Positions 18,731 through 58,342 of a stretch of 64,000 nucleotides of DNA are shown here, one piece after another. The DNA comes from Geosiphon pyriformis uo1. Its lineage: Eukaryota > Fungi > Glomeromycota. The notes beneath the pieces were generated by a model. That model ran no database searches and was not told the DNA's origin. It worked only from the letters and a program-made list of their open reading frames with translations. Each line of letters starts with the position of its first letter. Within the stretch, counting starts at the first letter, position 1. The DNA is taken from contig JAAOMT010000322.1 of assembly GCA_016748015.1 (NCBI GenBank), positions 82,660 to 146,659 of the forward strand, written 5' to 3'. The translations under genes and the position numbers were made by a program.

Positions 18731-18739
18731 TATCTTAAT

Positions 18740-18772
<33 letters not shown>

Positions 18773-19049
18773 TGTAAAAGAAATAGAATTTTGTTAAAAA
18801 AATCATTTTTTGGTCTAGGTTTAGAGTAATTAGTGGTTTTTATTGAAATTGGTAGCTAATTAATTTCAAAATATTAGTTGGGTTTTGGAAAATTTTAAGT
18901 GATTTTATTTCAAGAATTGGTTTTTAAAATATATTTTTATTTTGAATTTGTATTTGTAAGATAATTCTAAAAAAGGTAAGATATCTATGATAAGATATAT
19001 TTTTTCAAAAAAAAAGCTCTTTTTTTATACAATTTGTTATAGTATTAGT

Positions 19050-21350
19050 CTATAAACTTGAACTTTTCTTTTTGCTATAATTTCGTTAAATTAAAAATAC
19101 ATTTCAATAAATTACAAGTTATTTTATTAAACTATTAACTATTTTGGTAAACTATTTAATATTTCAGCAAATTTTAGCAAATTTTTGAATGTTACATAGT
19201 TTAAGATATTGTGTAATTTGATTATTCTAATTTTTATTGTACAAATCGAGTTATTAATTAAATAGTAATATTTAATTAAATAATAAGTGATAATTGAAAT
19301 AATATTAATATATACTAATTAATAATAGAAATTATAAAAATAATTTGATACTAATTTTACAATTAAAATTTTACTGGTAACAGTATATATATTTTTGCAT
19401 GAATTTGGGTTAGTTAATGGCCAATAATAAGATTAACATACTATACAGCATATTAGTATCATCTAAGGCTCAGAGTTATTATAGTGTTTATATTATCAAA
19501 AATTGTGTTTTCTTAATATTGACTTAAATTGGTTTTCATTAAAAACCATGTTTTCTTAATTTTAGCTTAAGTGGTTTTTATTATTGTCTTGAGCTGAATT
19601 TTTAGCCAAAAAAATCAAGAAAAAAGTTTAAGAAAGAGTTATACTTACCTTTTTTATATAAATTTACTATTAATTTTATTAATTATAACCTAATTTTTTT
19701 TCAACAGCTTTTTGCTATTATCTTTAATAATACTACAAATAATGGTACTTTTGTAAGAAAGTTAGTAAAAAAATTAGAAGAGAAAAACATTCAATAGAAT
19801 TCCAAAAACTTTCAATTTTAATATTTTAATTATATTTTAAACTTAGCAATACAAACAGTTTTAAATGAAATAAAGAATAATATTTCCAAAATATTTGTTA
19901 AAAACTCAAATTAAATATATTTATCTGAAATTTTCTTAATGTAAACTTTGTATAAATTAAAGATTAGAAAACTTAACTCTACAATCTGTATCTTGTCTCA
20001 ATGTTTTAAGCTTCTTGAATATATCTGTAATGTATGTCAAATTAAATATCATAAACACATTCTGAATTGTCTTACCTAGTAGAATTCTACTTACAATTTA
20101 GTTAGAAATAAGTTATCTTTTAAATTAGCAAGTTATTTATTTTTGATTCTATATATTTTAAATACAAAAATTTTAATTATAAATTTATAAATATTAAACA
20201 CTTTTACTAACACTCATATTGACTTTTATTAATATATTATTTTATCCAATTAGTGGACTGTCTTTAATAAAATTGCTAAATTTTTTGAATTATTTAAAGA
20301 TATTATGATTAAAATATTAACCAGTTCAAATAATACTGTCTTTTTGATTATTTTTCTTTTTAATATCATTTTTAATCATATTGAAAACATAGTTAATAAT
20401 AATAAATTTAATAAAGCATTATAATCTCTATTGTATTTATTTAGTTATTTATTTAACACATTTAATATTAAATCTATTACTTATTATAGTGGCTAGGACA
20501 GTAAAAAAAAGTTAATTAAATATTACTCTAAAACAAATACAACTATAATGCTTTGTTTGCATTGAATTCAATGAAAATTTTCAGATGATAATATTAATAA
20601 AATAAAAAAATTGTAAATTATTAATTTATTTAAATGGTTTTATTTTTCAATTTTTACACAATAAATAAACCTTTAGAATACATACTCTTTTTAAAACAGA
20701 ATATACACTAGACATTATACCAACATTAAATAACAGTTTTTTGTTGAATAACAATGTTAATAATATTATAGTATTAGTTACATAATTTATATTAAAGGCA
20801 AACTTTAATAATGATAAAAAAAAAACTTAATAAAATTGATTATTATATCTCTAAAAAAGTGGCCAATAGAAAAATGTATATAATAATATAATAGAAAGTA
20901 TATTACAAAAAATATTTATTTAAATTAATATTTTATTAATAATTCAATATTTAAGAACATTAAACACAATTTTTTCATCTTATATGTATGACTTATAATT
21001 ATTTGGCAATTCAAAAATTATCTGTTGCTTTTAAACATGCTTTTTTTGTGGATAAAAATATAATTACAGATATAAAATTTCACTTAATGCTTAAAACTAT
21101 AAAAACAGCACAGTGTTTTTAATCATAGATACAGAGATTACTGAAAAGAAAATTAAATAATAATATAATATAATATAATGTTTTTAATAGTTAAATCTGT
21201 ATATGTTTATGAACTTTAAACCAAACTTAAATCAGACTTGTTGTATGTGTTTGGTTTTGGTTCAAGTTCAGTAATTTTAAGTTTGATTCAAGTTTGAATT
21301 CAAAATTTTGTTAAATTTTCTGTTTGAGTTTGGTTTTAATTCTAAGTCAC
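19050..21350 (+). mobile_element. Degenerate hAT-superfamily DNA transposon (transposase relic)
   Basis: Eroded hAT motifs in the correct order: NNTTNN (DNAxNN, ~19725), F*YFNYILNLAIQ (CxxHxLNL, ~19815), ILNCLT**NSTY (D.PTRWNSTY, 20059-20095), and dimerisation-domain-like YNYLAIQKLSVAFKHAFF...KTIKTAQCF*S* (~20990-21130). Termini not identified. Confidence 0.75.
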
Positions 21351-21399
21351 TTTTTTTTGATACTTTGCATATTGGTAAAGTTTTTTTTGTCATTCTGAA

Positions 21400-24300
21400 T
21401 AATATATCTATTAATGTTTATCTGGTTTTATTGAAATATTTTTAGAATTTTTGACCAATTAAATGCTTAGTATTGTATGTAAACTAAGCAATATAGATTT
21501 GATGTCTTTGGCATCTACCTTTTAATTTTCTATCTCAGCTGTTTCAATGTGTTTAAACATAGAATTAGATTTAAACATGATCTTAAATAATCCTCTAGTG
21601 TTGTCTTTTCTTTTATTTTTAGTTATAAAAAACAAGTTTTTTAATTTAGGTTTAAATAGTTCGAAGATTTTAACTACTAAGATTGGTGGCTTAAAATCAA
21701 AAATAGTTGCTCTTGAAATTTTTATTGGTTCAGTTTTAAAGAAGTTGAATTAATTGTGTGTTGATTCAAGTTTCTTGGCACATTTTTCATCTTAATAAGT
21801 AATTTTGTCAACTATATGTAATATTAAGAACATAAACAATATAATTAAACAAAAAGATATAATCAGATGGCACAATAAATTTGGCAATTAGGTTTCTATT
21901 ATTATTAAAACTAAGCTAAAAAAACAGGCTAGATCTTAGATAAAAAATAGATTTCAAGATGTAAAAGTTTTTGTTTCTGGTTTAGATACTGACTACATGA
22001 GTGCTAGAATAACAATAATAATAAACAATGCAAGTTTTTATGTTGTATTAAGTGACAATTTCAATAAAAATGGTGTAAAACACAATACAAGCTTCAAAAA
22101 ATGTTTTGATTTGGGTTTGTGCAATTTTTTGATAAATAATTCAGTTGCTAAGATTATGATATAAAGTAATTTGAAAGACATAAAAAAAACTATTGATTAT
22201 ATTTTAGTCAGTAAACATTTTTTGATGACAATTATTGAACATAAAGTTAATAGTGTTTCTGATTTCTTTAATACTGATTATTTGGCTATTGTAATTTCAA
22301 TTGGCTTGAATGGTTTTCTAGATAAATGCTTAAATGCAATCTATAAACAAGTTAATAAGTATTAATAGAAATTTGGTATTAAAAATACTAATAATTTAAA
22401 ATAAACTCAATTTAAAAAATACTTATTAGAACAAATGTTTAGTATACTTGGCAAGTTTTATATTGTAAAAAAGCAAAGTAATTTGGATGCTATGTAAAAG
22501 CTTCTAAAATTGGAAATAGTTGAATTGGCAAACAAAATTTTCTATAAAGTTTGGTTTAAAAATTCTAGTAATTTTAAAAACAAACAATTTTTAAGATTTT
22601 ACAGATTGAAAATTTTAGTTTCAAAAATTGTCAAAGTTTTTTTTTTAAGAAACATTATTAAGTTTGATTGTCTTTAAAAAATTTAGTCAAGATTAAATGT
22701 TGACAATTCTCTTAAGCTGTCATTTTTGATCAAAAATTGAATAAAAATTGAAAAAATACTCTTTTTTTATTAAAAATCAAGAAAAAATATTATATGTTCA
22801 AGTATTAAGAATTTAAAACTATGAAGACAGCTGTAATTAAAGACACAATTAGTAAAAAAATAGAAGACTTCTATATAAACAAGAGTTATATGATCAGAAG
22901 TGTTTTAGAGAAATCTTTTTGAAAAGTGGTTTTGAATTATTTGGTGATTGGTGAAGATTTGATTTGAAATCTGAAATGATGAAAAACAAGATGAATAAAA
23001 TAATGGAGAGCTAAATTAGAAAAAAATTGGTGCTTAAAATAGTACCAAATTTTTGGTTTTGGCAATATATGCTTTTGGATTATGTTAAAAATAGAATATT
23101 TTTTGAAATTATGAAACAAATCAGTTTAGATAAGTTGATTATAATTGTAGAAGATTTTACTTGATAACAAAACTGTTGGCTTATCTGGTATTTTAAATAA
23201 ATTGTAAAAGCATTATGGTTTTAATGTTATGGTTTGTTTCTTAGTTTTATTAAATTGTTATTTAGATGTTGATACAGTTTTTACTTTATAGAAAAGAGCT
23301 TGGATTTTTATAATTTCAAAGTTCTATAATTGGAATAGTATACTAATTAATACTATGCTAATTAAGACTGCCAAAAAAATTTTGTTAAAAATACTTTCAG
23401 ACTGGATCTTTTTTGTAAAAATAATTTTTTAGTGTTAAAGAGTATATTAACTTGGTCTTTAGTATTTACAATTGGCTTGGTTGTAGAAAATGCTTTAAAA
23501 AAAAATAAAAAGCTGTAATTGGTTTTGCAAAACATACATAAAGCATATGATTTAGTTGGCTGATATTATTTGAGAAACAGATTAAGATATATTAAAATAT
23601 ATAAACAATTTAATTATTTTTTTGGTAGTATATACTAAAACAAAATTAACAGAATTATAACTGACTTTAGTCTGTTAAATAATTATTGTATACATAATAG
23701 ACTAGATTAAAGTGAAGTTTTTTCATCTTTTTTTTAAAGAATTTTTTATAACTTCTTTTTATGTAAAATTAAGAGACATAAACATTTATGTAATTATTAT
23801 ATTAATACAAAATTTGTAGTCAAAACAGACAGACTAAAAAACACAAAAGAAAAAACTTTTTTTCTTACAGCTAGTATTTTTGTTGATAATACAATTTAGG
23901 TAAAAAATAGCCAAATTTCAATTCAATATATTTTAAACATTATTAGTGAATTTTTTGATATCAACAATATTTTAATTAATAATAACAAAACAGTGGTCAT
24001 TTCTATTAACCAAATGATTAAATATGTTTTTTTAATTATTAATGAGAATTTTATATTAATTGCAAAAAAAGTAAGTTATATTATTATTTAGAAATTTTTT
24101 TTTTATTAATAGTTTATTTAAACTTAGTTTGGCCAAAGCTTATTCAGATATTAGATTTTTTATAAACATAGTTTTAAAAAAAATGATCTTAAATAAACAA
24201 TTTTGTTATTTGGTTTCTGCTGTTTTATAACTAATTATATATTATTATATGTAGTTTAATTTTATTTTAGTTAATGTTTGCTGCAAATCAGATTTTTTAA

Positions 24301-25210
24301 TTAAAAAAAATTTAAGATTAAAAGCTGAATTGCTTAAAAATTTTTTTAATAAAGCATTATATCATCTACTGCTGTACAATCTAAAGTCTTTTGAACAATT
24401 GCAAGTTAAAAATAAAGTGACTTTAACAGTTTTGTTTGCTAATTTTGAGAGAATTCTTAGCAAACTCTTTGATTATTGGTTTTTAGATTTGCAAATTTTG
24501 GGCTGGACTTCAACTAATTTTCTGTAATATTTTATTAAATTAAAGATCAGTTTTATAAACAATTTTTTTACTAAAGTAATACAAATATTTTTAAATAATA
24601 AAATCTCATTAATAAATAACTTACTACAAGTTTTTTACAGTTTAGGCAAGTTTTTAATATCTGATATCTTGAAAAAAAAACCTACTATAGAATAATAGTT
24701 TTTTTAAAGCATTATAGTATTGCTTTTGGTAATAGATTTTTAGATAAACATGGTGTTTTAATAACTTGAAAGATTTTTTGCCATTGAAAAAGACTGGATT
24801 TAAGAAGTTCTATTCTGTTTTGGTTTGCTATAGCATTTGGTTTTTTGGATAGTTTAAAATTTAATATTGAGAATAAGGTAAATGTTTCAAATTTAGTTTT
24901 TTATAATGTCTTGAATTTAGATAATTTTGGATTAATCAAAAATTTTTTACATGAAGTTTGGGCCAATACTTTTAATGTTTACACTAATAGCCCATTCAAG
25001 AAATTGAGTGTATCAAAGATGACAGGTAAAACAGCTGTCTACTTTTTAAATATAAATATAAGTATTGGTATTAGAATTTTCAGTATAGTGTTTTTTATGA
25101 TGACTGAACTATATGTTGTTATTTTGGCTTTAGAATATATGCTTTTTTATCGTACTGTAATTTTGCATTTGGACAATTAGGCAGCTATTAATGCGTATTT
25201 AGTTAGAATT
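21400..25210 (+). mobile_element. Degenerate non-LTR retrotransposon (LINE): ORF1 tail, AP endonuclease, reverse transcriptase, RNase H
   Basis: APE motifs TICNIKN..IIKTKL (~21810-21920), SDNFN, TIDYILVS, NTDYLAI. RT motifs LVLQNIHKAYDLVG* (~23520-23563) and IFVDNTI*V (~23876-23902). RNase H motifs VYTNSP, MTELYVV, LHLDN*AAI (~24975-25195). Confidence 0.85.
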
Positions 25211-26256
25211 ACTTAGGTTAATTTTGTATGCTAGATAACAATTGGACTGTATTCATTAAAAAAATAAAAAATAAAAAATTTAATTAAAAAAAACTTTTAG
25301 TTAAAAACTGTTTTATTTTAAAATTATTTAGAAAAATACTTTTATATTAATTTATTTAGTTAAAAAAACTTTTTAAAAATATTTCAATATTGTATTTTAT
25401 AATATTTTAAATGTAATTTTTTTTAAATAATATTTATTTTGGATATTTTATTTTTAAAATTGGTTGTTAATTTAATTATTAACTAATTATTAATTAAACT
25501 ATTAATCTAATTATTAAATTATTTTTATTATTTTTATATTTAATTTTCTTTTAATCTATAATAATTGAAAATAAATAAAATATGTCATTAAATTCTAAAA
25601 GTGCTAATTGAAATATAAAATTATAGCTGTGTTATTTTTTTGTTAATAGTTATAAACTATTTTTCTATCTTCAAATTTTTTTAAAAAGATTAATAACTGC
25701 AATTTCATAAGACTAATTCCAAGAGGAAGGGTGGAGAAAGGAAGTAGTAATAAAATTTATAAAAACATCTTTGCAGGATAGTAATAAATTTTTTAAAAAT
25801 GTACATTTAAATATAATTTATATAGAAATAGTAATATTCTACTCATTGTTCGATAAATTAGAGGTTGCTTGGGTAATATCTTAAATAATCTATATTTGCA
25901 ACCTTGAATTAAGTTAAACGAGTAAACGATAAAATATCAAACTCAGAAATAATATTCTATAGGTTTGAAATAGATCTAATAAACTTATAATTTATGATTT
26001 AAAATATAATAAAGGTATCTAGGATTCATCCGTTAAATAATTAAAAGAATAAGTATGAAAAATGAATATGACTGATCAGATTTATTAAGTATCATCTAAA
26101 GATAATAGATAGTAAAAATAATGTAGTGCTAAACAAGAGTATAAATTTTATTAATGGTTAATAATGGATGTAATTTCTTACCTTTAGGGAGAAAGACAAA
26201 TTATTTTAAAATAGTAAAGTAAATTAAGATAAAATTAATTTTTTATATACTGCATA

Positions 26257-27206
26257 TTAAATCAAAGAATTAATCAATACTAAATTAGAGAAAATAACCC
26301 TAGAAAAATCAACCATCTGTGCAGTTAAAAGACCTGTTATAAACTGCTCCTGGATGAATTGCTGTTGTTTGTTGTCAAGTAATTTGTTGTGATGTTGTTC
26401 TTCTAGATATTTATCTGATTCCATAAACTCGGACCTACAAGAAGAACGAAGTTCCCTTAACTTATCCCAAACTTCAACCGCAGTAGGACGATTCTTAGGA
26501 TTAACATCCCAACACTTTTTAATGAGTTCAGCGTAACAAGGAGGAATAAGTGGGGAGGTAATTTTAGGTCTTTGAACATTTAAAGTAGCCATTATAGGAA
26601 TATGATCATTAGAACGATTATGAAAAGGAGGCTTTCCTGTTACTAATTCCCATAATAACATAGAAAAACTATAAATCTCAACCTTTTCTGTAAACTTTTC
26701 TCCTCTTAAAACTTCTGGTGGAATGTATGGAATCACTCCATATATCTTTTTCTTTTCTGTTGCTGTCTCTGTTATTATTGCTTCATTGTTTGAATTTGTT
26801 TCCTTGTTTACTGGTTGACATAATCCGAGGTCTCCAATTTTTAGATAATTATTCCTTAATAGCAGGATGTTGCACGGGTGTAGGTCATGATGAACCATAT
26901 CAGAAGAATGAATTTCTTCAAGTCCTGAAGCTATACTCCACGTGATATATAATTTATCTTTACAACTCGTAGAATGAAAATTTGTTGATAAATATTTTCG
27001 TATGTCACCATGTTTGGTAAACTCCATCACAATTCCATAATCAAGTGTTTCAGAGTTTTGCGTAATACCCAATATTGGAGAGATATATTCTAAATTCCCA
27101 CTCTTAATAAACACAGCTCTTCGAATATTTAACTATCTATAGTAAATAGATGATATAGAGTAAATAAATAATAGTTAAATATGAATTAAATATAAACATA
27201 AGTTTA

Positions 27207-32038: not shown

Positions 32039-33492
32039 TTATCTTTTTATGATTTGAAAAACTTCATACTCCTCGACAGAAAAATTCATCTGTTGATTTT
32101 CTGACCCAGGCATTATAGCATGCTCATAAATAGTTGTCTTTTGACAATAGCACCCTGAACTATTTTTAAAATTATTGCCACTCAATCTTATATTGTTATT
32201 TCCAAAATAGGGTCCACAATCTGGCCCATTAAAAGGTCCACATCCTTTAACAAATTTGCTAAGTATAGCATTTTCAGCATTGTCATCTCCAAGATAAAAA
32301 ATAAAACTTCCTTCTCCATCTAGCCACTGATTTCGAGAGTGCCAAGATTGTGGGTTAAAGCCGCCAATTATCTGACCAGTTCCTTTCACTTTGATTACGC
32401 TAATTGTTGCTCCTTTATCATCGCATAANNNNNNNNNNNNNNNNNNNNNNNNNNNNNNNNNNNNNNNNNNNNNNNNNNNNNNNNNNNNNNNNNNNNNNNN
32501 NNNNNNNNNNNNNNNNNNNNNNNNNNNNNNNNNNNNNNNNNNNNNNNNNNNNNNNNNNNNNNNNNNNNNNNNNNNNNNNNNNNNNNNNNNNNNNNNNNNN
32601 NNNNNNNNNNNNNNNNNNNNNNNNNNNNNNNNNNNNNNNNNNNNNNNNNNNNNNNNNNNNNNNNNNNNNNNNNNNNNNNNNNNNNNNNNNNNNNNNNNNN
32701 NNNNNNNNNNNNNNNNNNNNNNNNNNNNNNNNNNNNNNNNNNNNNNNNNNNNNNNNNNNNNNNNNNNNNNNNNNNNNNNNNNNNNNNNNNNNNNNNNNNN
32801 NNNNNNNNNNNNNNNNNNNNNNNNNNNNNNNNNNNNNNNNNNNNNNNNNNNNNNNNNNNNNNNNNNNNNNNNNNNNNNNNNNNNNNNNNNNNNNNNNNNN
32901 NNNNNNNNNNNNNNNNNNNNNNNNNNNNNNNNNNNNNNNNNNNNNNNNNNNNNNNNNNNNNNNNNNNNNNNNNNNNNNNNNNNNNNNNNNNNNNNNNNNN
33001 NNNNNNNNNNNNNNNNNNNNNNNNNNNNNNNNNNNNNNNNNNNNNNNNNNNNNNNNNNNNNNNNNNNNNNNNNNNNNNNNNNNNNNNNNNNNNNNNNNNN
33101 NNNNNNNNNNNNNNNNNNNNNNNNNNNNNNNNNNNNNNNNNNNNNNNNNNNNNNNNNNNNNNNNNNNNNNNNNNNNNNNNNNNNNNNNNNNNNNNNNNNN
33201 NNNNNNNNNNNNNNNNNNNNNNNNNNNNNNNNNNNNNNNNNNNNNTTTCAAAAATCTTTGGTGAAATATTAGGTTTAGGAAGAATAATGATATTATTTTC
33301 CCTTTTAATCCAATTGCTAGAGAGTGCGACAGCAAAATATGGTGATCTTGCTGCTAAAATTTGGGAATGAGCATGAAAAGTTCTAATATTGGTCGCTTCG
33401 CCAACTATAATTCTAATATCAGAGAACTTCTGACTGTCAAATAAATTCCCAAAATCATTGGATAAAGCGTGAAAGTATTGTTGGGGTGACAT
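32039..33492 (-). CDS. BTB/POZ-BACK-TLDc protein, copy 1 (middle hidden by assembly gap)
   Basis: BTB start FSDIRIIVG..FHAHSQILAARSPYF and TLDc end GGFNP..SFIF..GPYFG..VEEYEVFQI. Both visible parts are almost identical to copy 2. Confidence 0.8.
32429..33245. other. Assembly gap (817 N)
   Basis: Run of N. The length is close to the ~860 nt equivalent segment of copy 2. Confidence 1.
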
Positions 33493-36515: not shown

Positions 36516-39149
36516 ATAATCGAAGACTTAAGTTTTTTAAATTGTAAAGTTGGTCTATTTAGCCCAATTAACAAAGTTTTTACATGAGAATTTTGGAAAT
36601 TTGCGCTCACAGAATTTTCTATAACATATTGCTCTAAGCCCTAAAATAAAGTTTCAAGGTTAAAGGTTACAAATAAAATATTAATACGTCTATTTTAATA
36701 ATTATTCAATTTGAAGAATATTTTTCTAAATCTTTAGGCAGGGTTAGATTTTATTTTCATCCAATTAATTGAATTGCACTAAAAATCTAAATTTTAAATA
36801 TAGGCTGCACTTGGTTACAATTTTCTGATATTTAAAGATACAACAATTACTATTGAGAAATGCCAAAAAAAAGATTAATAATAATAATAAATAGAAAACA
36901 TTAGTAAATAGTTTTAGTCATAAACATAAAGTAAAAAGTCTACTAAATTTTTTTAATACTTTATAATTCATTTACTATTCAGATTATGTCAAAATTTGAA
37001 ATCCTATTATAAAAATTGATTAAAAATATTATTATTAAAAATAATTTCTGCTATTATATTAATATATTAATGGTTTTTTTATTTTAACAAATATTTATTT
37101 GGATTTTTTAAGTTCAAAATATTTTTTCCTTTTATTTTTTCATTACAAATTTTAAAAGTGATTGTTGAATCATAAAATTATTAATTTTTGTTGAAAATAA
37201 ACAGAAATGTATAAATTATGTTGAAAAAGGTTTATTAAAATCTTTACAAATTTAAAAATAAATTGTCATTTAGTCTTGTTCATTGTTTGTATTTATTTGG
37301 TCCCAAAATATTCATAAAATATAATAACTAAAATATAAAATCTTATGTTAAACCAATTACAAAAAATGATTAATAATGTAATTATAATTTTTTGAACAAT
37401 AAATAAAAATCAATTAAAATATGCTTTTTATTTTCATTTAATATGTTCAACCTTAAAATTTTTGAATAACTGATTTAAATATATAACCAAAATTAATTTA
37501 ACATGTTATTTTAATATTAAAATCAAATATTATGTATAAAAATTAATTTTAACTACAAATGACCATTATATTAATGGTAATTAATTCAACCATGTAATAT
37601 TTAACATGATACTGATTCTAATTTATTAAAAGGGCATTTCAATATTATATAATGACTTTAATATTAGGCAATATATTAAATTTATCTCGTAAAATTTTTA
37701 AATAACTATCGAGTTAAAATTTTTAACAAACCAGTTTGAAAATTTGCCATTTTTTCCAAATTAAATATATGTAATTTATTAATGACAAAACAATTGAATA
37801 AATTAAAATCCAGTTTTATATTAAAAAACAGTTTCAAATTATTTTTAATAATATTACTTGAATATTTAGTCTTTTATTTATATTTGACTTATAAAATTAT
37901 AAAAACTTTTCAAAATTTAAAACAGTTTAGTCTTTATAAACAAGAAATTCATTAAGTTTTTCATAGTATTTATAATCATAAAAATAACTTCAAATAAATA
38001 ATACAAAATATTTGATTTTTTTTATAAAAACATTAGGTTTTATTTTAGCAGCAAAAAAAGTAATGACTTAAAAAATATTTAAATGATTGATAATTTAAGT
38101 TTTAAAAACAGAGTAATAAAAATAATAAAAAGTGCATATGTTCAAAAGTATCTTTAATGATTTCTGTTTTACAATATCTATAAATTATATTGTCTACAAC
38201 AAATCTTTTTCAATCAATATTAATTGTAATAGTGTAAAATTCTATTTAAAATAATTATAAATAATAGCTTTTTATTGCTTAACATTTAGTTTTTTACTAG
38301 ATTTTAATAATCAAGAAAGTTGACCAATTGTAATACATTTTTTTTGTCATTAAAAAAATTTGGCATTTCAATTTAAGGGACTTAATACATTAACAGGTTT
38401 TAGTACCAGCCTAATTAAAGTATTAATATTTTGTAAATAAAATAATAATGAATATTCAATATTTTTAAATTCTTCTGATATAAAACAAGTTTTTAATTAC
38501 TTCTAACAACAATATGCTGAAATATTAAATTTTGTTTGATTCAAAGAATGCTTACTAAAAGTATTTTCGACAAATAAATCGCAATCAGTTTAAAAAATAT
38601 AATTATTTGTCAAAATTTAGCATTACAAAATGTAATCCATCATGAATTGAGTGTTGGTTCAAGAATACAAAGAGCTTTCATAATCTCTTTGATGCTGCAC
38701 TATTAATGTATGTTGAGAACTAGATAAAAGAATTTTTGATAATAAAAATATTAAATCAACATACTTGGTCCGACAGAATGCTGCTCCGAAGTATTAAGAA
38801 AAAACATACATTTTTTTCTTATACGAGAATTATTATTAGCTTTGTTATATCCATATATTCATTGAGAGAACAGTTGATTTACTAAAGCATACTGACAAAC
38901 ATCTTCTCTAATTCACGAAAATTAAACCTTTTAAATTTTAAGTATTTGAGATAGAGTTGGATAAAAACAAATCAAATTGAATCTTAAATCAAAAAACATT
39001 TAACAAGTAACATTAAAAGTTTTTCGTCACGCACACTTAATTCATCGACCAAACGCTTTGCAGAAATATATAAATACACTGCTTTGAATTAGTATCAATC
39101 AATGATCGCGAGAGTTAAGGTATATTTTCTTGTCTAACTATTTTCATGT

Positions 39150-39878
39150 TATGCATCTCCATCATGCTATTGCCAGATTAAAAAATCGTTATTCATTATA
39201 CTTGCTCCTAGTCACTCTTGACGATCGACATTCAAAATGAAAAATTTTCTTGTCATGATGAAGGTGGTGTTGAGTTTTTTTAATTTAAAGCTTTAATTTT
39301 ATATAGCCGCATATTTCAGAATTTAATGAAATTTTCTGGCTCTTCTTCTTTTCGAGTCTACCCTATCACGGGTGCTTTCTGGATCTCAAGAATTTTGGAT
39401 GCTAAATTGATATCTGTCTTTACATTTGACCAACCACGAATGGGAGAACTTCGTTTATCAAAATTTTTAAATGATTGCATAAGTATATACCGGATCACCT
39501 ATCAAGATGATTTTATGCCACAAATGCCTTCCAGAAGCGGAGATTTAAAAGGATATTTTCGTTCTGCGTATGAATATTGGATTGAACAAGATTGCGAATG
39601 TTCAGATCCATCTATCTCGAAAAACTCTGCCACAAAACCAGCACATTTTAATCTTTATGCATATAAAGAATTTTGAAATGAATATTTACAGAGATTTGAA
39701 TAGCCCAAGGTGATAGTTTTAAAACTTTGGAATTTTCAAGAAATTTAAACTTCCTATGACATTCTTCTATATATAAAAGGAATGCAATGAAATGGCATAA
39801 AGTTCTCAAGCACCAAATAATTTAAGACTAGAGCTACACTTTGGTCCATATTTCGGCTATTTAATAGGAATATGTTGA
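39150..39878 (+). pseudogene. Lipase class 3 (alpha/beta hydrolase) pseudogene
   Basis: VFTFDQPRMG (TFGQPRxG), YRITYQDDFMPQMP, YEYWIEQDCEC, final exon HFGPYFGYLIGIC*. The GHSxGG nucleophile motif is degenerate (GSSSFR). Internal stops. Start approximate. Confidence 0.7.
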
Positions 39879-41555
39879 TGCCTCAGGAAATCTAAATATG
39901 GCATTATCAGATTTTTAGAATTGCACACCTCTGACTCTTATATGGTTGATCCTATTCGATCGAGTAGGAACTAGATACCTAACAAATGTATTAACTAATC
40001 TTAAAGCTTCAAAGCACCCATTACGATAATTCAAATAGTTCATAGCTAAATGAATGCACAGCTTTCAGATCCATTCAGGTGACATTTTTTATTTTTAAGC
40101 ATTACTATCATCAGAAACTAGAATCTTAAAAGAATATAGGATTTTCAAATTTAATTTTAGCCAATTTTTTGTGATAAGATATATTTTGAAATTTTGGCTT
40201 AAGCTTATTTTACCTGATTTATTTATTATCAATACTTTTTCCACTTACAAATACACATTTTTTTATATCATGGAGGAAAATTATAAATAAATTGAATATT
40301 AGAATATTAGTATAGCTCCAAGCAAATTTTTATTCGGGATAAAGTAAATTTTAAATCTACATTTAATTTTCAAGCACCTTATTTGGTACTTTTTATATTT
40401 TATCACATTGAAAGATTTACTTAAGGAAGATTATAAATAGTTTTATCTTTGTATATTGATAAAAGTGTCTTGGTAATGTGGTAATGCTTTGAAATTAAGA
40501 TCATTATAAACGAAACGTAATTTTTTTTAACGCTGCTCTGAAGTTCAGTGTATCGTTTATATAATATACTTTTTGATTTTTAGAATAAATTTTTGCGTAA
40601 CTTTTCTTTGCAAACCCAATTTGTTTGTCATTGAAAAAGGTTAAATTTTATTTAAGAATTTTACATCTGATTTATATGATGCCCTGTACCTCCCAAAGAG
40701 ATGAATTTAGGCTTGATAAAAAAAAATTGCTCATCTTTTTACTTAATTAGTGAAATATTTTCTCTGTTCCACTTTTCAGACTCATTTTTAGGATTCTTTG
40801 GATCGATGCCAACATAAACACTTTTCCCACTATTATATGCAAAATAAATTTATTAACTGATTGTGAATTCAAAATCAAAATGCGAAGATAAAACTAACCA
40901 TCAAATTATGTGATATCAATATTAAAACAAATTATAAAAAGCACAAAAACACAATCCTACATGCTTGTGCTTTCAAACTAAGGATTTGCCGCATTCAAGG
41001 TTCAAACCTAAGAACCCTTTATTTTCGCCAAGAGAATTTATAGATATTAATAATCGACTAGAATCTTCTATTTGATATGGCAGCTTCAAATAAATTGTGT
41101 GGGAATTTAGACTTATGAAGATATTAAATTTAAAAATCAGATATAAATATTTATTATATCAAAGCCTTCGACAAAGTTGGCATATGCTTTCATTATCCAG
41201 TACGATATAAATTTTTTAATGAATTGCTGCTTTCGTCCATGAGAAAATTTTTCTTACCAACATTTCCATATTAGATCAGATAAGAAATCTTATAATGTAT
41301 TCTTTTGACTTTTCGGAGCTACCTCCATAGTAAAAATAGAAATTTAATATGAGGCTGATTGTTATTTCCTTTGCTTAACATCTAATTGGCACGTAAGATT
41401 AGCTTTCTGACATTATTTCTCAAAATAGTAAACTATGATAAAATTTAAAATAGAGATGACGGCCAAAAATTTTTGGATATTGGTTTTACGTTTAATTTTT
41501 CCTAAAATTTGATCAAGTTTGAAAAAATTATTAAATGAGAACACCATGAATACTC

Positions 41556-41562
41556 TATAAAA
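41556..41562 (+). promoter_or_regulatory. Candidate TATA box of the small peptide gene
   Basis: TATAAAA ~105 nt upstream of ATG 41666, followed by a pyrimidine-rich leader. AT-rich background limits confidence. Confidence 0.4.
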
Positions 41563-41665
41563 ACCCATTTTTTCTCCAGCTTTTTATCCTTATTCAACAA
41601 AGTTCACTTTCTCAAAAAACTTTTCATCCCCTCAAACATCTGAAAAACACGTAAAAAACTACGAG

Positions 41666-41984
41666 ATGGCCAAAGAAAAATTAGTTTTCAAAATTCTTCT
41701 CATATCCACTTTTCTTGCTTATGGTTTTCTATTCACTTGGGTAGATGCGTTTCCAAAGGGAAAAAGTATGAGTTGATAAATTAGTACTTTTGACAAAATT
41801 TAAAAAGTTTCGGAATTTACTAATTATGCATAAGAAAAAATGCTAATTGTATTTGGCATATTGCAAAACATCACTAGTAGGTTCGCTTGAGAAACGTACT
41901 TTTTGTGGAGGCAACAAACCAGAATGTCCTAAGTGTTTCCCAGGTGAAGCATGTGCCCTGGACCACCCATGCTGCCATACGTAG
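41666..41984 (+). CDS. Small secreted cysteine-rich prepropeptide (67-68 aa); exons 41666-41765 and 41878 or 41881-41984
   Basis: MAKEKLVFKILLISTFLAYGFLFTWVDA-FPKGK|(IG or S)SLEKR-TFCGGNKPECPKCFPGEACALDHPCCHT*. GTATGA donor, GCTAAT branch point, tandem TAGTAG acceptor with both options in frame. No stops or frameshifts. Confidence 0.8.
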
Positions 41985-44775
41985 ATTATTTTAATAGTTA
42001 GACATATTAGCTCTCAAATTTCAGTCAGAATGGAAGCTTTTTTCCCTTATTATTGTTCTCAAAAACAAAAGCAAGTTTTATAATGCTGATTGGCTTTTTT
42101 AATTTAGTTTATTCTTAATTAACGAATAAATTTGCTAGCTATTAAATCATTGTTTTGATGAGAAGCTCTATATATATATATATTAATGTTTGAGCGAAAA
42201 ACATCCACTTTTACTGAATTGAAGGGTTTCAACAATTTTGCAAATTTACTGAAAAATTTTCGATATTTAATTGAGAATATTCTGTTCCTAACACTATTCG
42301 TCATGATCGGATGAAAAATTTTTCAATTTATAACTGCTGCCTGCCCGACTGTCTTTTAAAAAAATATAATAGTGCTAGGGACAAAGGCTATTGCAAAAAA
42401 AATAGAGGTAATTTTTTCTTCAATCACTTTAAACTGCATACTTAATGTAACGAGGATGATAACCCTTTTGCAAAACAAGTGATCACCAATTCAAGTCTCC
42501 GAGTGATTAGCAAGATCTTTCACGCTTTACACTAAAGTTCGATCAAATGCAAAGTTTCTAAAGAGTTATTTATTTGTAGCGGATACTGATCTGCAACAAA
42601 AACCTCGAGGCGAGGTGGTTATCCATTTTTTCCTTGAACTCGATAATAAACTGATTTCTCATTTTATGTTGTTCCAGGGATCAAAGATCTAGGTATTCGA
42701 CATCCTAAAGTTTGTACTTTTTCATTCCTGTCTATGTGCGTATTATTTTCATATGTTGGCATTTTTCTTTACAATTATAAATTGGCTTACGAGTCCACAA
42801 TCCTTATATTGAGAAATTTCTGGTAGTTTATTAACTTGTTATAATTATAATATTTGGTATAAAAACATAAATTTATTATAGTATTAAAAACTTTTTTTAA
42901 ATAAATTTAAATTAATTTTAGTTATTTTAAAAGCTTTTTAGTTTATTAAAATTATTTAAATATTAAATTTTATTAAATATTAAATTAATCAACTAAAAAT
43001 TATTAATAATTTTTAAAACTGTTTATTCAATAAATTACAAAAACAAGTTTCTTATTTCTCAAGTTAATTTTAACAAATACGATTTAAAAAAGATAAAAAA
43101 AGAAATAAGGTTGAATTTAATTTAGTAGTAAAAATGTTAGAAATAAATATAAAATAAAGTGATTAAAATATAATTGAAATAAGTATTTTTAATTATTTTA
43201 AATTTATTAATATTTATAAATTGCTTCAATTATTATTTTTGTTAAATAAAAAAAACGTTTAAGCTTTGCGCACTTTTTTTAAAAATAAATCAATTGTTTA
43301 AAATTAAATTTTGTATTCTATTAAGATATTTTAAAGCCAAAAATTTTTGTAAGTTAATATCGAAGTTGAACAAAAAAGGCGTGCAAATGAAACTCATATT
43401 ATTTAAGTAGTTATTTTTATTTATGTAAGACAATTAAAAAACTTATTTGGGACAAAAGATTTTTGTTATTTTTTATGAAAATTACTCTATTTTCAAGAAA
43501 TTTCGACGAAAACAATAAGATCTGCTTATTTAATAAGTGTTATTGATTTTCAAATACACAAAATAATAAAAAGTTTTTGTAATTTGAAAAAATTGGAATA
43601 ACAAACAAATATTAAAATGGTTAAAATAATAAAATTAACTTAAAAATTTAAAAAATACAATCTTAAAACAAATATGTAAAATAAACTCAACAAAAATAAT
43701 ACTTTGTTAATTTAAAATACAAAATTATGGATAAAAAAGAGAAGTGTTTTAAAATAAATGACAATTTTACAGTATATTACTAAACTAGAAAAAAATTATA
43801 ACAAACAATTTATAATTTCACAATAATAGTGGTTTTAAGAATCATTTTGATAATTATTAAAATTGTATTTCATTATATTTGTATGCAATTAATATTATAT
43901 TTAATTAAATCATAAAAAAATACCAGTTTTTACTAATAATTAATAGTTTACCTAATTAAATTCTTTTTGGAAATATTTTTTAAAATATCATTTTGTACTA
44001 ATAAAGTTACCAAAATTAAAATATAATATAAATTATAGTTTTAATTCACATTATCAATTTTTTTATTAATATTATTTTTGAATAATAGTTATTAAATGCT
44101 GTACCATCAGTTTTGTTAAAACACTTGATAACCTTTTCTTTTAATAAAATAGAAATCAAAACTTTTTAACTATTTTGATGAGCTTGCAAGCGTTTTAGGA
44201 AAAACCAAATTTAAATAATTTAGGAAGAATTATGGAGTTTTGGATTTCGTTTTCTATAAGATTTAAAAGAATTATAGTTAGAATGAAAAATTACGATAAT
44301 AGAATCAATAAAATACTTCAATATCTTGAATGAAACTTTAAAAAAAACTTTGATAATTAGCTTTTATTATAGATAAAAAATTACTGACAACATTAAACAA
44401 TCTGAATTATTTGGAAAGATGAATGCAAATATGAGGAAATGACCAAAATTGACCAATTCTGAATAACTTATTTTAAAAAAAAATCCTCATTAATTTAAAA
44501 AATGGGTTGATAGTTTGAGAGTAAAATATTATAAAGAAAAATTTTCAGTCAAGAATAATCTGGATTAAAAATTAACAGTTTAGATATTTCATGGTTTTCA
44601 TATAGAGGCTGTGATCGTTGGAGGCGATTTGATTAAAGACTCGGAATTAATTGATCAATCGATAATGTGCAGGTTAACATGTGACTTCTCCAGATCATTA
44701 TATAACTATGTTCGATAGCATAAATCCCTAATACGTAGAGAAAAAGACCTCACTCAGACTTCTCATATTTTACCA

Positions 44776-46267
44776 ATGTCACCCCAACAATACTTTCACG
44801 CTTTATCCAATGATTTTGGGAATTTATTTGACAGTCAGAAGTTCTCTGATATTAGAATTATAGTTGGCGAAGCGACCAATATTAGAACTTTTCATGCTCA
44901 TTCCCAAATTTTAGCAGCAAGATCATCATATTTTGCTGTCGCACTCTCTAGCAATTGGATTAAAAGGGAAAATAATATCATTATTCTTCCTAAACCTAAT
45001 ATTTCACCAAAGATTTTTGAAATAATTCTCAGGTAAGGGTTTTCATTTGCTTCAAATATTTTGGCCAACATAAAATTGACTGTTTTATTTCCTAAACAGA
45101 TATATTTATAATGGCGAGATTTCTCTTGATAAACATGGAGTACCTACTATTTTAGAATTGCTTGTTACCGCTGACGAGCTTATTCTAGAAAACATAATTG
45201 ATCACCTTGAAGATTATTTGATTGAACACCGTGCAAAAGAGTTAGAAGAAAATTTCACCACTTTGCAGAAAACATCATTTATGCATGATTCTTTCAAGAA
45301 GTTACAAAAATTCTGCACCGAAATAGCTGCTAACAATCCAGCCATAGTTTTCGATTCGCAAGATTTTACCTCTCTTAGTGAAAAGGCTCTTTCCTCAATT
45401 TTAACCCGGGATGATCTAAATATAGAAGAATCTGAAATATGGGAAAAGATTGTTGAATGGGGAATTGCTAAATTAGATAACAATATTCAGACGAAAAAAG
45501 TTCCTTACTGGACAGATGAAAACTTTAACGCCTTTAAGGAATCCATCGAAAGGCTTCTACCTTTAATTCGGTTCTTTCACATATCTTCAGTTGACTTCTA
45601 TCACAAAGTAAAACCATTTGCGAGAATTTTACCTGGAACTTTATATGAAGATCTTTTACATCATTATCTCGTACCGGGTAGTTATCAAAAATCTGTAGAC
45701 GCTCAGCCATTCCGATCAACTGTTTCAAAGCTTCTTAAGTTACATAATATAAAGCAGCTTGATCATTGGATTCAAGGCAAAAACAAAAATACTCCTTTTG
45801 AAAGCAAACTTGGAAATGATTTTAAATTGTTACTTCGAGGCAGTCGAGACGGATTTACTCCAGCCGATTTCCATCGATTATGCGATGATAAAGGAGCAAC
45901 AATTAGCGTAATCAAAGTGAAAGGAACTGGTCAGATAATTGGCGGCTTTAACCCACAATCTTGGCACTCTCGAAATCAGTGGCTAGATGGAGAAGGAAGT
46001 TTTATTTTTTATCTTGGAGATGACAATGCTGAAAATGCTATACTTAGCAAATTTGTTAAAGGATGTGGACCTTTTAATGGGCCAGATTGTGGACCCTATT
46101 TTGGAAATAACAATATAAGATTGAGTGGCAATAATTTTAAAAATAGTTCATGGTGCTATTGTCAAAAGACAACTATTTATGAGCATGCTATAATGCCTGG
46201 GTCAGAAAATCAACAGATGAATTTTTCTGTCGAGGAGTATGAAGTTTTTCAAATCATAAAAAGATAA
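44776..46267 (+). CDS. BTB/POZ-BACK-TLDc protein, copy 2 (intron ~45033-45099)
   Basis: BTB exon ...FEIILR|YIYNGEISL; BACK region (RDDLNIEESEIWEKIVEWG, LPLIRFF); TLDc (FKLLLRGSRDGF..FHRLCDDKGAT..EYEVFQI). Intact. Confidence 0.92.
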
Positions 46268-51552: not shown

Positions 51553-52484
51553 ATGGCAACAACAACAAAGGTGAAAACAATATCATTATCATCATCATCA
51601 TCATCATCATCGTCGTCGTCGTCTTCGTCTTCGTCTTCGTCGTCTTCGTCATCATCATCACCATCATCATCACCATCACCGTTATCCTCATATACCACCA
51701 CCACCACCACCACAAAAACTATATCGTTATCAGGAAAATTCCGTAAACCTAGGAGCAACGGTAACAATACTTTCAAAGACAGCCATAATGTTCTTCATTG
51801 TGACACTGATCATCATTCAATTAATATAAACCATAATAATAATCAAACCTTAATAAATTCCTTAGCCAACAAATTTATTAAATCGACTAAATTCAAATTC
51901 TTTCACACTCCCACCATTCATCGTTCTCACCCAACACCTAAATGTAATCATTTGACCGATTTCATACCCAATTCCCAAACTAATTCTCATTCCGACTCTC
52001 TAATCTATAATTACAATAAAAATATAAAAAATATCAACAACGACAACAAAAACGACAACGACCACAACTACTACAAAGATAAAAAGAACAATAATCATAA
52101 AGAAAGTTATATTCATAAAAAACAAGACAACAACGACCTTTTGACTTCATTTGGACAACAAAATAAACCTTTTCGAAATATAAATAATCTGCATATAATG
52201 CATGAATTACAAATTATTAATTCAGAGAATATGACTTCGAGTTCTAATGAGAGTATCAATAAGAGTTCGAATAAAAGTGAAAATGAAAATCTCACTAGAA
52301 CGATAAAGATTTCAACCGGAATTTCAAATTCAAATCATGACAATAAGATATCGAGTACAAATCCAACATCATTATACAAAAGGTCGAAAGATGAAAGTTC
52401 AAAAGAGAAAACCATGAATAAACCACCAATTCCAATAACTACAACTAATAATACACCTACAACAGCAACAACAGCAACAACAGC

Positions 52485-52537
<53 letters not shown>

Positions 52538-53949
52538 CTGCAGCCACAACCTCAACTCTAAACACAATTTTCCCTCATATTATTCTTGAAGAATCTTTAG
52601 AAATTTATTTATTAGCACAGCACCTTTTCGAACCTTGTCATAAAATCAAAAAAACTCTTGAAAAATTTTTAATTTCAAAAAACAGTTCCCCCGATTTTCT
52701 TTTCTCTATAACATTTTTAGAATCTAAAAATAATCTTGTAAAATATGGTCCCTTCCTCGCATTTCTTTATCAAACTGGTTTTGGCACTGGTTATAACCAA
52801 TCAAAAGTATTTTCCATTTATGAAGATTTAGCGGTTAACATGGACCCGGCTATTCTTAACAGTCTTGGAGAATGTTATATGCATGGCATTGGAATCTCGG
52901 TGCAGGAGACGATAGCTTTCCGATATTTTACGCAATCAGCGAATAAAGGGAATTCTAATGGTCAATACAATCTGGCATTATGTTATCTTTCAGGCATTGG
53001 CATTCCACAACCGTCTTCACTACAATTATCATCATCCCTTTCCTCGTTTGCGGGATCCCAATTTTTTTTCTGGTTACAAAAATCCTCATCCCAGAATCAT
53101 CCATTAGCACAACTTCAACTAGCAAAATGTTTACAATTTGGTTTTGCTACCGAAAAAAATTCCACAGAAGCTTTTTATTATTTATCCAAATCTGCTGAGA
53201 ATGGAAGTCATGAGGCACAATATGAACTAGGAAAATCTTTGTCTTTAATGGATCGTGGAAAAAAAGATTTAGGATTGGTCTTTGATTGGTATTGGAAATC
53301 GGCAATGAATGGCAATCCTAAAGCTCAATTACGTGTCGCTGAAGCGTATAAAGATGGGAAAGGAATAAAAAGGATTGAATCGGTTGCTGTCAAGTGGTAT
53401 TTGAAAGCTGCTCAATGTGGTGGTCAGTTGGAGGCGTATTTTCAATTAGGACATTTGATTCATTGTGGGAATGGATGTCGAAAAGATCGAGTGAAAGCTT
53501 TTAGATGTTTTATGAAGAGTCTTGAAAATGTAAATAAGGTCAGGCTACGCCGGGTTGAGAATAAGTGGTGGGGGATTGAAATCGGGATCAGAGGGTTAGA
53601 GACCAAGAATGAGGTTGAAAATGAAAAAATTCAAGTTCAGCAAATTCAGGATACCGAGACTACAATTATTCAAACTCCTTTATTATTAAACAACAACAAC
53701 AACAACACTGAAGAAAAATTCAACCTACTAGCCGAATGGGAACAATTACAAGATGAAAGTAAAGCAGATTCGAAAACTGCTGAAAAAGACTGGCAACCTA
53801 GAGCACAATATGCTCTCGGTAATTCATACCATTACGGTTGGGGTGTTCAAAAAGATTCACATAAAGCGATTTATTGGTATCGACGTGCTCGTGTAAATGA
53901 TCATCGTTCTGCAAAGGTTCAAATGAAATTACTTTTTAAAGGAAAGTAG
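51553..53949 (+). CDS. Sel1-like repeat protein with long low-complexity (poly-Ser/Thr/Asn) N-terminus, single ORF of 798 aa
   Basis: Multiple Sel1 units: LGECYMHGIG..AFRYFTQSA, GQYNLALCYLSGIG, AQLQLAKCLQFG, AQYELG, AQYALGNSYHYGWGVQKD..AIYWY. Confidence 0.9.
52459..52537. repeat. (ACA/GCA)n coding microsatellite (poly-Thr); a poly-Ser tract lies at ~51583-51690
   Basis: Direct reading. Confidence 0.9.
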
Positions 53950-56852: not shown

Positions 56853-58342
56853 ATGGCACCCCAGCAATTCTTTCAAGCTTTATCCGATGATTTTGGAAAT
56901 TTACTGGATAGCCAGAATTTTTCTGATGTTAGGATTGTTGTTGGTGAAGCGCCCAATATTAGAGTCTTTCAAGCTCATTCACAAATTTTAGCAGCAAGAT
57001 CACCATATTTTGCTGTAGCACTCTCTAGCAATGGGGTTAAAAGGGAAAATAATACCATTATATTTGATAAACCTAATATTTCACCCAAAATTTTTGAGAT
57101 TATTCTCAGGTAAAAAGTTTTCATTTACTTCAAAGTGTTTTTGCAATATAGATTCATACGTTTTATTTCGTCCACAGATATATTTATAATGGCGAGATTA
57201 TTCTTGATAAATATGAAATATTTACCATTCTCGAATTGCTTGTTACCGCTAACGAGCTTATTTTAGAAAAAATTATTAATCATCTTGAAGACTATTTGAT
57301 TGAACACCATGCAAAAGAGCTAGAAGAAAATTTCGCCACTTTGCAGAGAACCTCATTTACGCATGATTCTTTCAAGAAGTTACAAAATTTCTGTACCAAA
57401 ATAGTTGGTAACAATCCAGCTATAATTTTCAACTCCCAAGATTTTACCTCCCTTAGTGAAAATGTTCTTTTCTCAATTTTAACCCGGGATGATCTAAATA
57501 TAGAAGAATCTGAAATATGGGAAAAGATTGTGGAATGGGGAGTTGCTAAATTGGATAACAATACTCAGATGAAAAAAGTTTTTTACTGGACAGATGAAAA
57601 CTTTAACGTCTTTAAGGAATCCATCGAAAGATTTCTACCTTTAATCCGCTTCTTTAACATATCATCAGTTGACTTCTATCACAAAGTAAAACCATTTGCG
57701 AGAATATTACCTGGAACTTTATACGAAGATCTTTTACATCATTATCTCGTACCGGGTAGTCATCAAGAGTCTATAGACGCTCGGCCATTACGATTAAATA
57801 TTGATTCAAACCTTCTTCAACCGCATAATATAAAACAGCTTGACCATTGGATTCAAGGCAAAAACGAAAATACTCCTTTTAAAGGTCAACTTCGAAATAA
57901 TTTTAAATTGTTACTTCGAGGCAGTCGAGACGGATTTACTCCAGCCGATTTTCATCGATTATGCGATGATAAAGGAGCAACAGTAAGCGTAATAAAAGTG
58001 AAAGGAACTGGTCAACTAATTGGCGGCTATATCCCAGAATCTTGGCACTCTCGGAATGAACGTCTCAATGGAAAAGATAGTTTTATTTTTTCCCTTGAAG
58101 ATGGCAAAGTCGGAAATGTTAAACTTAGCAAATGGGTTGAGGGATATACACCTTTTGGTGGTTCAAATTTTGGACCCACTTTTGGCGGTGGCAATCTTGA
58201 GTTGTGTGGCAAAGATTTTAAAACTAGTCCAGGGTGCTTTTGTAGAAAGACAAAAAGTCATGAGCGTGCTATAATGCCTGGGTTAGAAAATGAAAAGGTG
58301 GATTTCTTTGTCCAGGAGTATGAGGTCTTTCAAATTATATAG
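56853..58342 (+). CDS. BTB/POZ-BACK-TLDc protein, copy 3 (intron ~57110-57177)
   Basis: Same architecture and intron position as copy 2. Intact. Confidence 0.92.

Follow-up and report, generated by a model that had tools for sequence, protein, structure and literature searches.

[quoted passage not shown] In yeast, it is extracellular and serves in protein binding, with the HMH domain of the mucins Hkr1 and Msb2 as its ligand, according to a passage in PMC13233613 that cites earlier work (Yamamoto 2016, PMC4719420). Pfam describes the domain as family PF09463, with a profile of 35 positions and a gathering cut-off of 22.1 bits, and its canonical motif holds eight cysteines (C-x2-C-x5/6-C-x2-C-x5-C-x6-C-x2-C-x4-C). 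Our literature search returned no paper that mentions PF09463 and none that describes secreted Opy2-like peptides; an 'Opy2-like membrane anchor' gene born in Glomeromycotina is mentioned in passing in one study (PMC10234402). A second described system, the KEX2-processed repeat proteins (KEPs) of fungi, consists of several near-identical short repeats flanked by Kex2 sites, with at least four fragments called for in the survey pipeline (PMC6339444, PMC7329392).

The DNA analysed here, referred to below as the window, is a stretch of 64,000 nucleotides from Geosiphon pyriformis. To our knowledge, Geosiphon is the one glomeromycotan that houses Nostoc, and the only fungus with intracellular cyanobacteria; a preliminary description made from the letters alone had considered just such a host with a cyanobacterial partner. 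The same description had proposed a two-exon gene, absent from the list of open reading frames, for a cysteine-rich peptide behind a predicted signal peptide and a pro-region ending in LEKR. This gene model has held up: the sequence is as described, and the same unit recurs at three other loci in the genome.

On the plus strand, the reading frame starts with an ATG at 41666, and 33 codons read directly in the DNA give MAKEKLVFKILLISTFLAYGFLFTWVDAFPKGK. Exon 1 (41666..41765) closes with a single extra base at 41765, making the intron phase 1, and it corresponds to the annotated exon 1 of the sibling genes described below, with 88% protein identity. The intron begins at 41766 with the donor GTATGA, contains a branch-point-like CTAAT at 41843-41847 and ends in the tandem acceptor TAG-TAG-G, with AG at 41876-77 and 41879-80; it thus spans 41766..41880, or ends at 41877 if the first acceptor is used. 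Both NCBI sibling models contain the same intron, which is 90% identical to that of the C702 sibling. The frame is kept with either acceptor, giving a protein of 67 or 68 amino acids. The 67-residue form (..GKSSLEKR..) is the favoured predicted product, because the annotated sibling G9A89_017619 (..FPKGK-S-SLEKR..) uses the acceptor equivalent to 41879-80. Exon 2 (plus strand, 41881..41984 including the stop codon, again a direct read) continues with ..SLEKR followed by TFCGGNKPECPKCFPGEACALDHPCCHT, and the stop codon lies at 41982-84.

A signal peptide is predicted for residues M1-A28 (plus strand, 41666..41749), with cleavage after V-D-A, on heuristic features: an n-region charge of +1, a mean Kyte-Doolittle value of 2.38 over a 12-residue window, and V-D-A at positions -3 to -1. 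The LEKR motif, the predicted Kex2 cleavage site, occupies 41886..41897 on the plus strand, where the DNA of the three single-module copies agrees completely (100% identity). About 103 nt 5′ of the ATG lies a putative TATA box, TATAAAAA (41556..41563, plus strand), which is kept in the C702 and C549 copies. The 3′UTR (plus strand, 41994..42170) is 92-94% identical to those of the siblings, and includes AATAAA at 42125-42130, a putative poly(A) signal that is absent from C702. Promoter, splice sites, Kex2 site and open reading frame are all undamaged in the window copy. Neither a word search with the exon-2 frame nor a search with the module profile found an entry for it in the protein collection, in which the sibling proteins are present, and the window gene is therefore really unannotated.

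Paralogues, which the preliminary description had proposed to look for, do exist. We searched the genome of the species itself (128.3 Mb, 792 contigs), in six frames with exon 2 and then at the DNA level with the 5′ flank, exon 1 and the intron, and recovered three further loci, at C702:1445.7 kb, C549:389.4 kb and C597:211.0 kb. Common to all are the 5′UTR, signal exon, intron, a pro-region ending in KR and the 3′UTR, a unit that is 85-100% identical at the other loci; GSLEKR is likewise shared between the window copy and its paralogues. The C702 copy is NCBI G9A89_017619, a hypothetical protein of 78 amino acids with one module, and the C549 copy is G9A89_004906, a hypothetical protein of 235 amino acids with four modules and two KR sites between module pairs. 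Both have the splice pattern of the window copy. The third copy (C597:211031-211315, minus strand) carries a 1-nt insertion (GGG for GG) that leads immediately to a TGA after the third cysteine, and its upstream promoter homology is gone. The C597 copy has probably become a pseudogene, but the insertion may instead stem from an assembly error in the homopolymer. In the region 5′ of the C549 copy (C549:389143-389393), the shared promoter sequence has its initial ~60-85 nt in inverted orientation, which indicates a small local rearrangement. Judged by its sequence, then, the window copy, on C619, is a genuine unannotated paralogue in a subfamily of four loci, together with the C702 and C549 copies and the broken C597 copy.

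The subfamily is assigned by Pfam to PF09463. The four-module C549 copy scores 76.2 bits and the one-module C702 copy 24.8 bits; the window copy scores 18.6 bits, below the 22.1-bit cut-off, and covers positions 4-28 of the 35-position profile only. Its descent from a bona fide PF09463 module is nevertheless evident, the window gene being the sister of G9A89_017619 within a duplication of 94.5% identity. The part that aligns in frame with the Opy2-type module (41898..41960, plus strand; C-x6-C-P-x-C-x5-C, in PF09463 and in the family alignment) comprises Cys2-Cys5 of the eight-cysteine motif, and these are the only canonical cysteines that the window copy has. The preliminary description had not recognised the spacing C-x6-C-x2-C-x5-C-x5-CC as that of any named family and had regarded a match to a described family as removing its novelty. 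Such a match has now been found: by alignment, the pattern comprises Cys2-Cys5, from the first two thirds of the Opy2 module, joined to a tail that arose by frameshift, and thus it is a portion of a known module and neither a new scaffold nor a new family.

Throughout the Kex2-processed subfamily, Cys1 and Cys6 have been lost together in the family alignment. Their joint loss suggests that these two cysteines pair with each other in the canonical module. More widely, the genome contains at least 20 modules of PF09463 type. One of them belongs to the true Opy2 orthologue (C669:1236256-1236357, minus strand), which has an eight-cysteine CR domain, a transmembrane segment and a long Ser/Thr/Pro-rich tail in an open frame of 485 amino acids. 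The remaining modules are found in small proteins with one to four modules each, several with obvious signal peptides, which cluster on C549, C597 and C643. The Kex2-processed subfamily appears to be an offshoot of this larger expansion of Opy2 modules in small secreted proteins. Two tandem duplicate genes at C597:180541 and C597:190515 encode secreted multi-module Opy2-like proteins without a Kex2 site; the two agree exactly in signal peptide and first module, and one of them carries an additional module, inserted in the middle of the protein.

Outside Geosiphon, an exhaustive HMMER search with G9A89_017619, standing for the full-length product, against 1.84 billion representative proteins found no counterpart of the signal and pro scaffold; its matches, to Mortierella and to one metagenome protein, cover the module only. 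Word-based protein searches found no match with the window exon-2 frame and only itself with the C549 exon, and the module profile retrieved Geosiphon proteins only.

The window gene and G9A89_017619 lie in a segmental duplication (37212..44167 in the window, in reverse orientation on C702) that aligns over 6814 ungapped columns with 94.5% identity. The flanks of the gene within this duplication provide a neutral baseline, as they diverge by 5.1% outside the mature-peptide codons. Inside those codons (41898-41984) the two copies mismatch at 33 of 87 positions (62% identity), against 343 of 6727 outside (Fisher p=5e-20). The lowest 66-nt sliding window in the 7 kb, at 41906-41971, has 59% identity, and the next lowest 80%. 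By the mismatches between the window and C702 copies, this hyperdivergent island (41899..41993, plus strand) opens in the first mature codon and closes 9 nt beyond the stop. A like contrast between flanks and mature part appears in all three copy pairs, with identities of 90-100% and 57-69%, respectively.

Between the window and C702 copies, dN is about 0.57 and dS about 0.19 over only 21 gap-free codons, and both these values and the estimates for the island rest on very few sites. In the same 21 codons, 19.8 non-synonymous differences are observed where 2.5 would be expected at the flank rate (P=3.5e-11). The synonymous differences (2.2 observed, 0.68 expected) are not significantly in excess (P=0.15). 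Synonymous distances follow the tree of the flanks, with the window and C702 copies closest, whereas the non-synonymous distances make the window copy the outlier; a three-point estimate places a non-synonymous branch of ~0.385 on the window copy and 0.185 on C702. The cysteine, proline and glutamate positions of the scaffold are kept between the two copies, and the loop residues all differ.

Several other features of the window were recorded in passing. Within the segmental duplication, an ORF at 39326-39676 matches only the C-terminal third of Lipase_3 (positions 92-138 of 140), and may be an exon or a gene fragment. A run of N at 32400-33300, either withheld sequence or a gap in the assembly, interrupts a minus-strand gene for a BTB-domain protein, the N-terminal 83 residues of which match the product of the plus-strand BTB gene at 44776 at all positions but one. 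These near-identical N-termini on opposite strands point to an inverted duplicate pair flanking the region. BTB-BACK-TLDc genes lie at 44776-46267 and 57236-58342, a Sel1-repeat ORF at 51553-53949 and a protein-kinase exon at 26257-27114 (minus strand); all three families are typically expanded in Glomeromycotina. The stretch from 16000 to 26000 is very AT-rich (19-21% GC), with a strong positive GC skew.

The preliminary description had called the gene intact while its neighbours had decayed. Comparison with the paralogues contradicts this, since the window copy has a frameshifting deletion of 17 nt relative to the C702, C597 and C549 modules alike and the C597 sibling is broken as well. The deletion maps to 41961..41964 on the plus strand, different alignments putting the gap after 41961 or after 41963, and the open reading frame ends seven codons past it, with no transmembrane segment. 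In the sibling alignment, the resulting tail DHPCCHT (41961..41981, plus strand) corresponds to the ancestral segment ..A-C-(P/R)-T-A-(I/E)-C.. translated out of frame. An exact 8-mer, CTGCCATA, is common to the window tail and to C597, in different frames, and C597 translated in the shifted frame gives ..SYCHM*, with its stop at the same place as that of the window copy. It follows that a TAC-to-TGC change created the second cysteine of the terminal CC in the window copy. The CC pair has no homology with the canonical Cys7 and Cys8, both of which the deletion has cost the window copy, along with the last beta-strand. A second mini-intron that would restore the frame after the deletion was considered and rejected, the sole GT..AG candidate being 17 nt long.

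Structure prediction, which had been proposed together with Foldseek, succeeded for the sibling and not for the window peptide. With an identical family alignment, AF2 models the intact C702 peptide at pLDDT 87 with a beta-hairpin (25-28/37-40), whereas the window peptide reaches pLDDT 64 and pTM 0.22, has no secondary structure and is missing the second strand. Searches with the confident C702 model, by Foldseek against the PDB and by VIA-align wide, gave no significant match, for which the domain may be too small, and in a search of solved structures the sole match was an irrelevant designed Kelch protein (E=6.5e-4).

With these observations, we consider the window copy somewhat likelier to be young and dying, in a family with birth-and-death turnover, than to encode a functional new peptide. 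It is less probable that the frameshift was adaptive and that the truncated 28-residue product is a neo-functionalised, secreted and active three-disulfide peptide, in which the two new adjacent cysteines re-pair those orphaned by the loss of Cys7 and Cys8. The unbroken reading frame, promoter, splice sites and Kex2 site are in keeping with such a product. So is the cysteine count, which is even (six) despite the frameshift and was regained through the single TAC-to-TGC change in the new frame; that change could reflect selection for a new disulfide. Moreover, non-synonymous change has run at ~10-fold the neutral rate with its longest branch on the window copy, and the synonymous distances still track the tree of the flanks, which argues for selection in situ. 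As the non-synonymous excess lies mostly on the window branch, this lineage has apparently been under selection for much of its history, and the truncated form may for that reason be functional. Against this stand the Pfam score under the cut-off and the low-confidence, structureless AF2 model from an alignment that folds the sibling well. The window's cysteine pattern, furthermore, has no relative in the genome or the databases searched. Finally, the C597 copy is plainly broken, so that gene death is common in this subfamily. We therefore continue to lean towards a dying copy.

The cause of the island is a separate matter. The substitution pattern is best explained by diversifying selection, in situ, on the peptide that would be released, and limits at the first mature codon and the stop codon are what would be expected under such selection. 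Two simpler causes were tried and rejected. RIP-like hypermutation is at odds with the ratio of transitions to transversions, which is 13:20 inside the island and 174:169 outside, and relaxed constraint alone could not push divergence above the neutral 5% seen in the flanks. Gene conversion or the exchange of a cassette, with no positive selection, is a less likely cause. In that case, the module would have come from another, older one, perhaps of an unsampled donor, or homogenisation would have affected the flanks on either side of an old module. Many divergent modules and multi-module genes could have served as donors, the boundaries of the island are sharp, and its dS of 0.19-0.39 is nominally above the flank divergence of 0.05. 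Nevertheless, no donor for the window module was found in the 128-Mb assembly, and the synonymous excess is the non-significant one given above. The order of the dS values also agrees with the flank tree, in which the window and C702 copies are closest, and the limits of the island, as noted, are those of the mature coding region. Diversifying selection in situ thus remains the preferred explanation of the island.

The cellular route of the product can be sketched from its predicted parts. It would enter the ER co-translationally and lose its signal peptide after VDA, and kexin would cleave after LEKR in the Golgi, releasing the free module. The preliminary description had taken KR as a kexin-type site, and the genome does contain a gene for a kexin-type protease, with a P-domain (PF01483, 53 bits) at C608:604583-604753 on the minus strand in an open frame of 468 amino acids; this is likely the Kex2 processing protease of Geosiphon. 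It is because the yeast Opy2 CR domain is described, in the passage cited at the outset, as binding the HMH domain of Hkr1 and Msb2 that the secreted modules are taken, by analogy, most likely to act as soluble binding or decoy ligands, with fast-changing loops that would set their specificity. The window copy itself would have been born by a segmental duplication of 7-10 kb, its mature codons would then have diverged ~7-fold faster than the flanks, and the 17-nt deletion would have followed, leaving the DHPCCHT* tail. Overall, we give a little better than even chances to this account: a paralogue with an Opy2-type module, from a family of Kex2-released binding or decoy ligands, the window copy of which is more likely dying.

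A bolder reading, in which the window form is functional, strikes us as improbable. In Geosiphon, the Opy2 ectodomain would have been co-opted into soluble mini-proteins that Kex2 releases and that diversify their loops, like conotoxins, at ~10-fold the neutral rate. If it were true, such peptides could bind fast-changing targets on Nostoc, endobacteria, plants or competitors, or serve as decoys for mucin-type sensors, and the frameshifted 28-residue form would be a new functional three-disulfide peptide born from loop diversification.

More doubtful still is a special case of the functional truncated peptide, the antimicrobial or symbiont-controlling role suggested in the preliminary description, with a target in Nostoc or bacteria and an analogy to legume NCRs. 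The host does carry Nostoc, and at the level of the subfamily the conserved signal and pro-region combined with a hypervariable mature part stand as expected from NCR/DEFL and venom-peptide families. A protein language model also places the sibling nearest to venom-peptide precursors, though at a score of 0.80 that is noise level. The charge of the peptides speaks otherwise. Antimicrobial NCRs and defensins are typically cationic, whereas the mature window peptide has a charge of -1.5 at pH 7 and a pI of 5.9, and the C702 mature peptide a charge of -1.3; such slightly anionic peptides argue against a defensin-like, membrane-active role. There are, besides, only four copies, two of the four damaged, the window peptide is not predicted to adopt the fold of its own family module, and the module derives from a protein-binding ectodomain and not from a defensin fold. 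We regard an NCR-like role as very improbable, and binding or decoy ligands as the preferred reading of the family. The least tenable proposal, that the locus is a chance pair of open reading frames and no gene, can draw on the shortness of both exons (36 and 45 codons as raw ORFs) and on the public annotation having no model there, but it is practically refuted by an architecture kept at four loci, two of the four being annotated genes.

The annotation of small secreted peptides is poor in Glomeromycotina, and the present locus shows how a real family member can be overlooked. The cysteine module (PF09463) is already known, and public databases already list two of the siblings as hypothetical proteins; what is new is a truncated member of a lineage-specific, predicted secreted and Kex2-processed variant of the Opy2 module. 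The result at the level of the family is the more useful one, as it presents a known fungal signalling ectodomain, the Opy2 CR domain, in the form of predicted free, secreted modules. Of most interest at the locus is the extremely divergent island: the sole fast-evolving stretch in a ~95%-identical 7-kb duplicate is exactly the peptide predicted to be released, a clean natural marker of arms-race or partner-specific selection. The intact siblings G9A89_017619 and G9A89_004906 are better candidates for testing than the window copy, and the 'novel' cysteine pattern of the latter should be treated with caution, as a frameshift artefact of a known module.

Among known systems, the Opy2 CR domain is the homologous one, with the siblings above the Pfam cut-off and the window copy retaining the C-P-x-C core; like that domain, the peptide is disulfide-rich and predicted to be extracellular. 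The subfamily lacks Cys1 and Cys6, and the window copy additionally lacks Cys7, Cys8 and the last strand through its frameshift. Compared with the Opy2 protein proper, a single-pass membrane anchor, the members of the subfamily are predicted to be soluble and secreted, with a signal peptide and a Kex2 pro-region of their own; the window copy has neither the transmembrane segment nor the Ste50-binding tail of the HOG-pathway anchor. Closest of all are G9A89_017619 and G9A89_004906, which share promoter, 5′UTR, signal exon, intron, KR pro-site and 3′UTR with the window copy, the former being its sister copy within the same segmental duplication. Their modules are complete (one and four, respectively), whereas that of the window copy is truncated, and its mature DNA is only ~60% identical to theirs.

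KEPs (PMC6339444, PMC7329392) resemble the subfamily in having a signal peptide and KR cleavage that releases small secreted peptides, both of which are predicted here. The window gene differs from them in having one KR site and one module in place of repeats, and the modules of the subfamily are non-identical, disulfide-rich domains of 30-35 residues. Conotoxins, spider toxins and plant NCR/DEFL peptides offer an analogy only. As in these hypervariable secreted peptides, the signal, pro-region, introns and UTRs are kept while the mature part is accelerated and hyperdivergent around a conserved cysteine scaffold. However, there is no sequence or fold homology to them, the venom-precursor look-alikes in the ESM Atlas score 0.80, at noise level, and the subfamily is tiny, with four loci, and anionic. 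In another lineage of Mucoromycota, Mortierella sp. GBAus27b, the hypothetical protein KAI8352707.1 carries tandem Opy2-type modules in a small protein of 185 amino acids, the match being confined to the module region. With its four Opy2-like stretches, it suggests that multi-module soluble Opy2-like proteins may be more widespread in Mucoromycota than the literature reflects.
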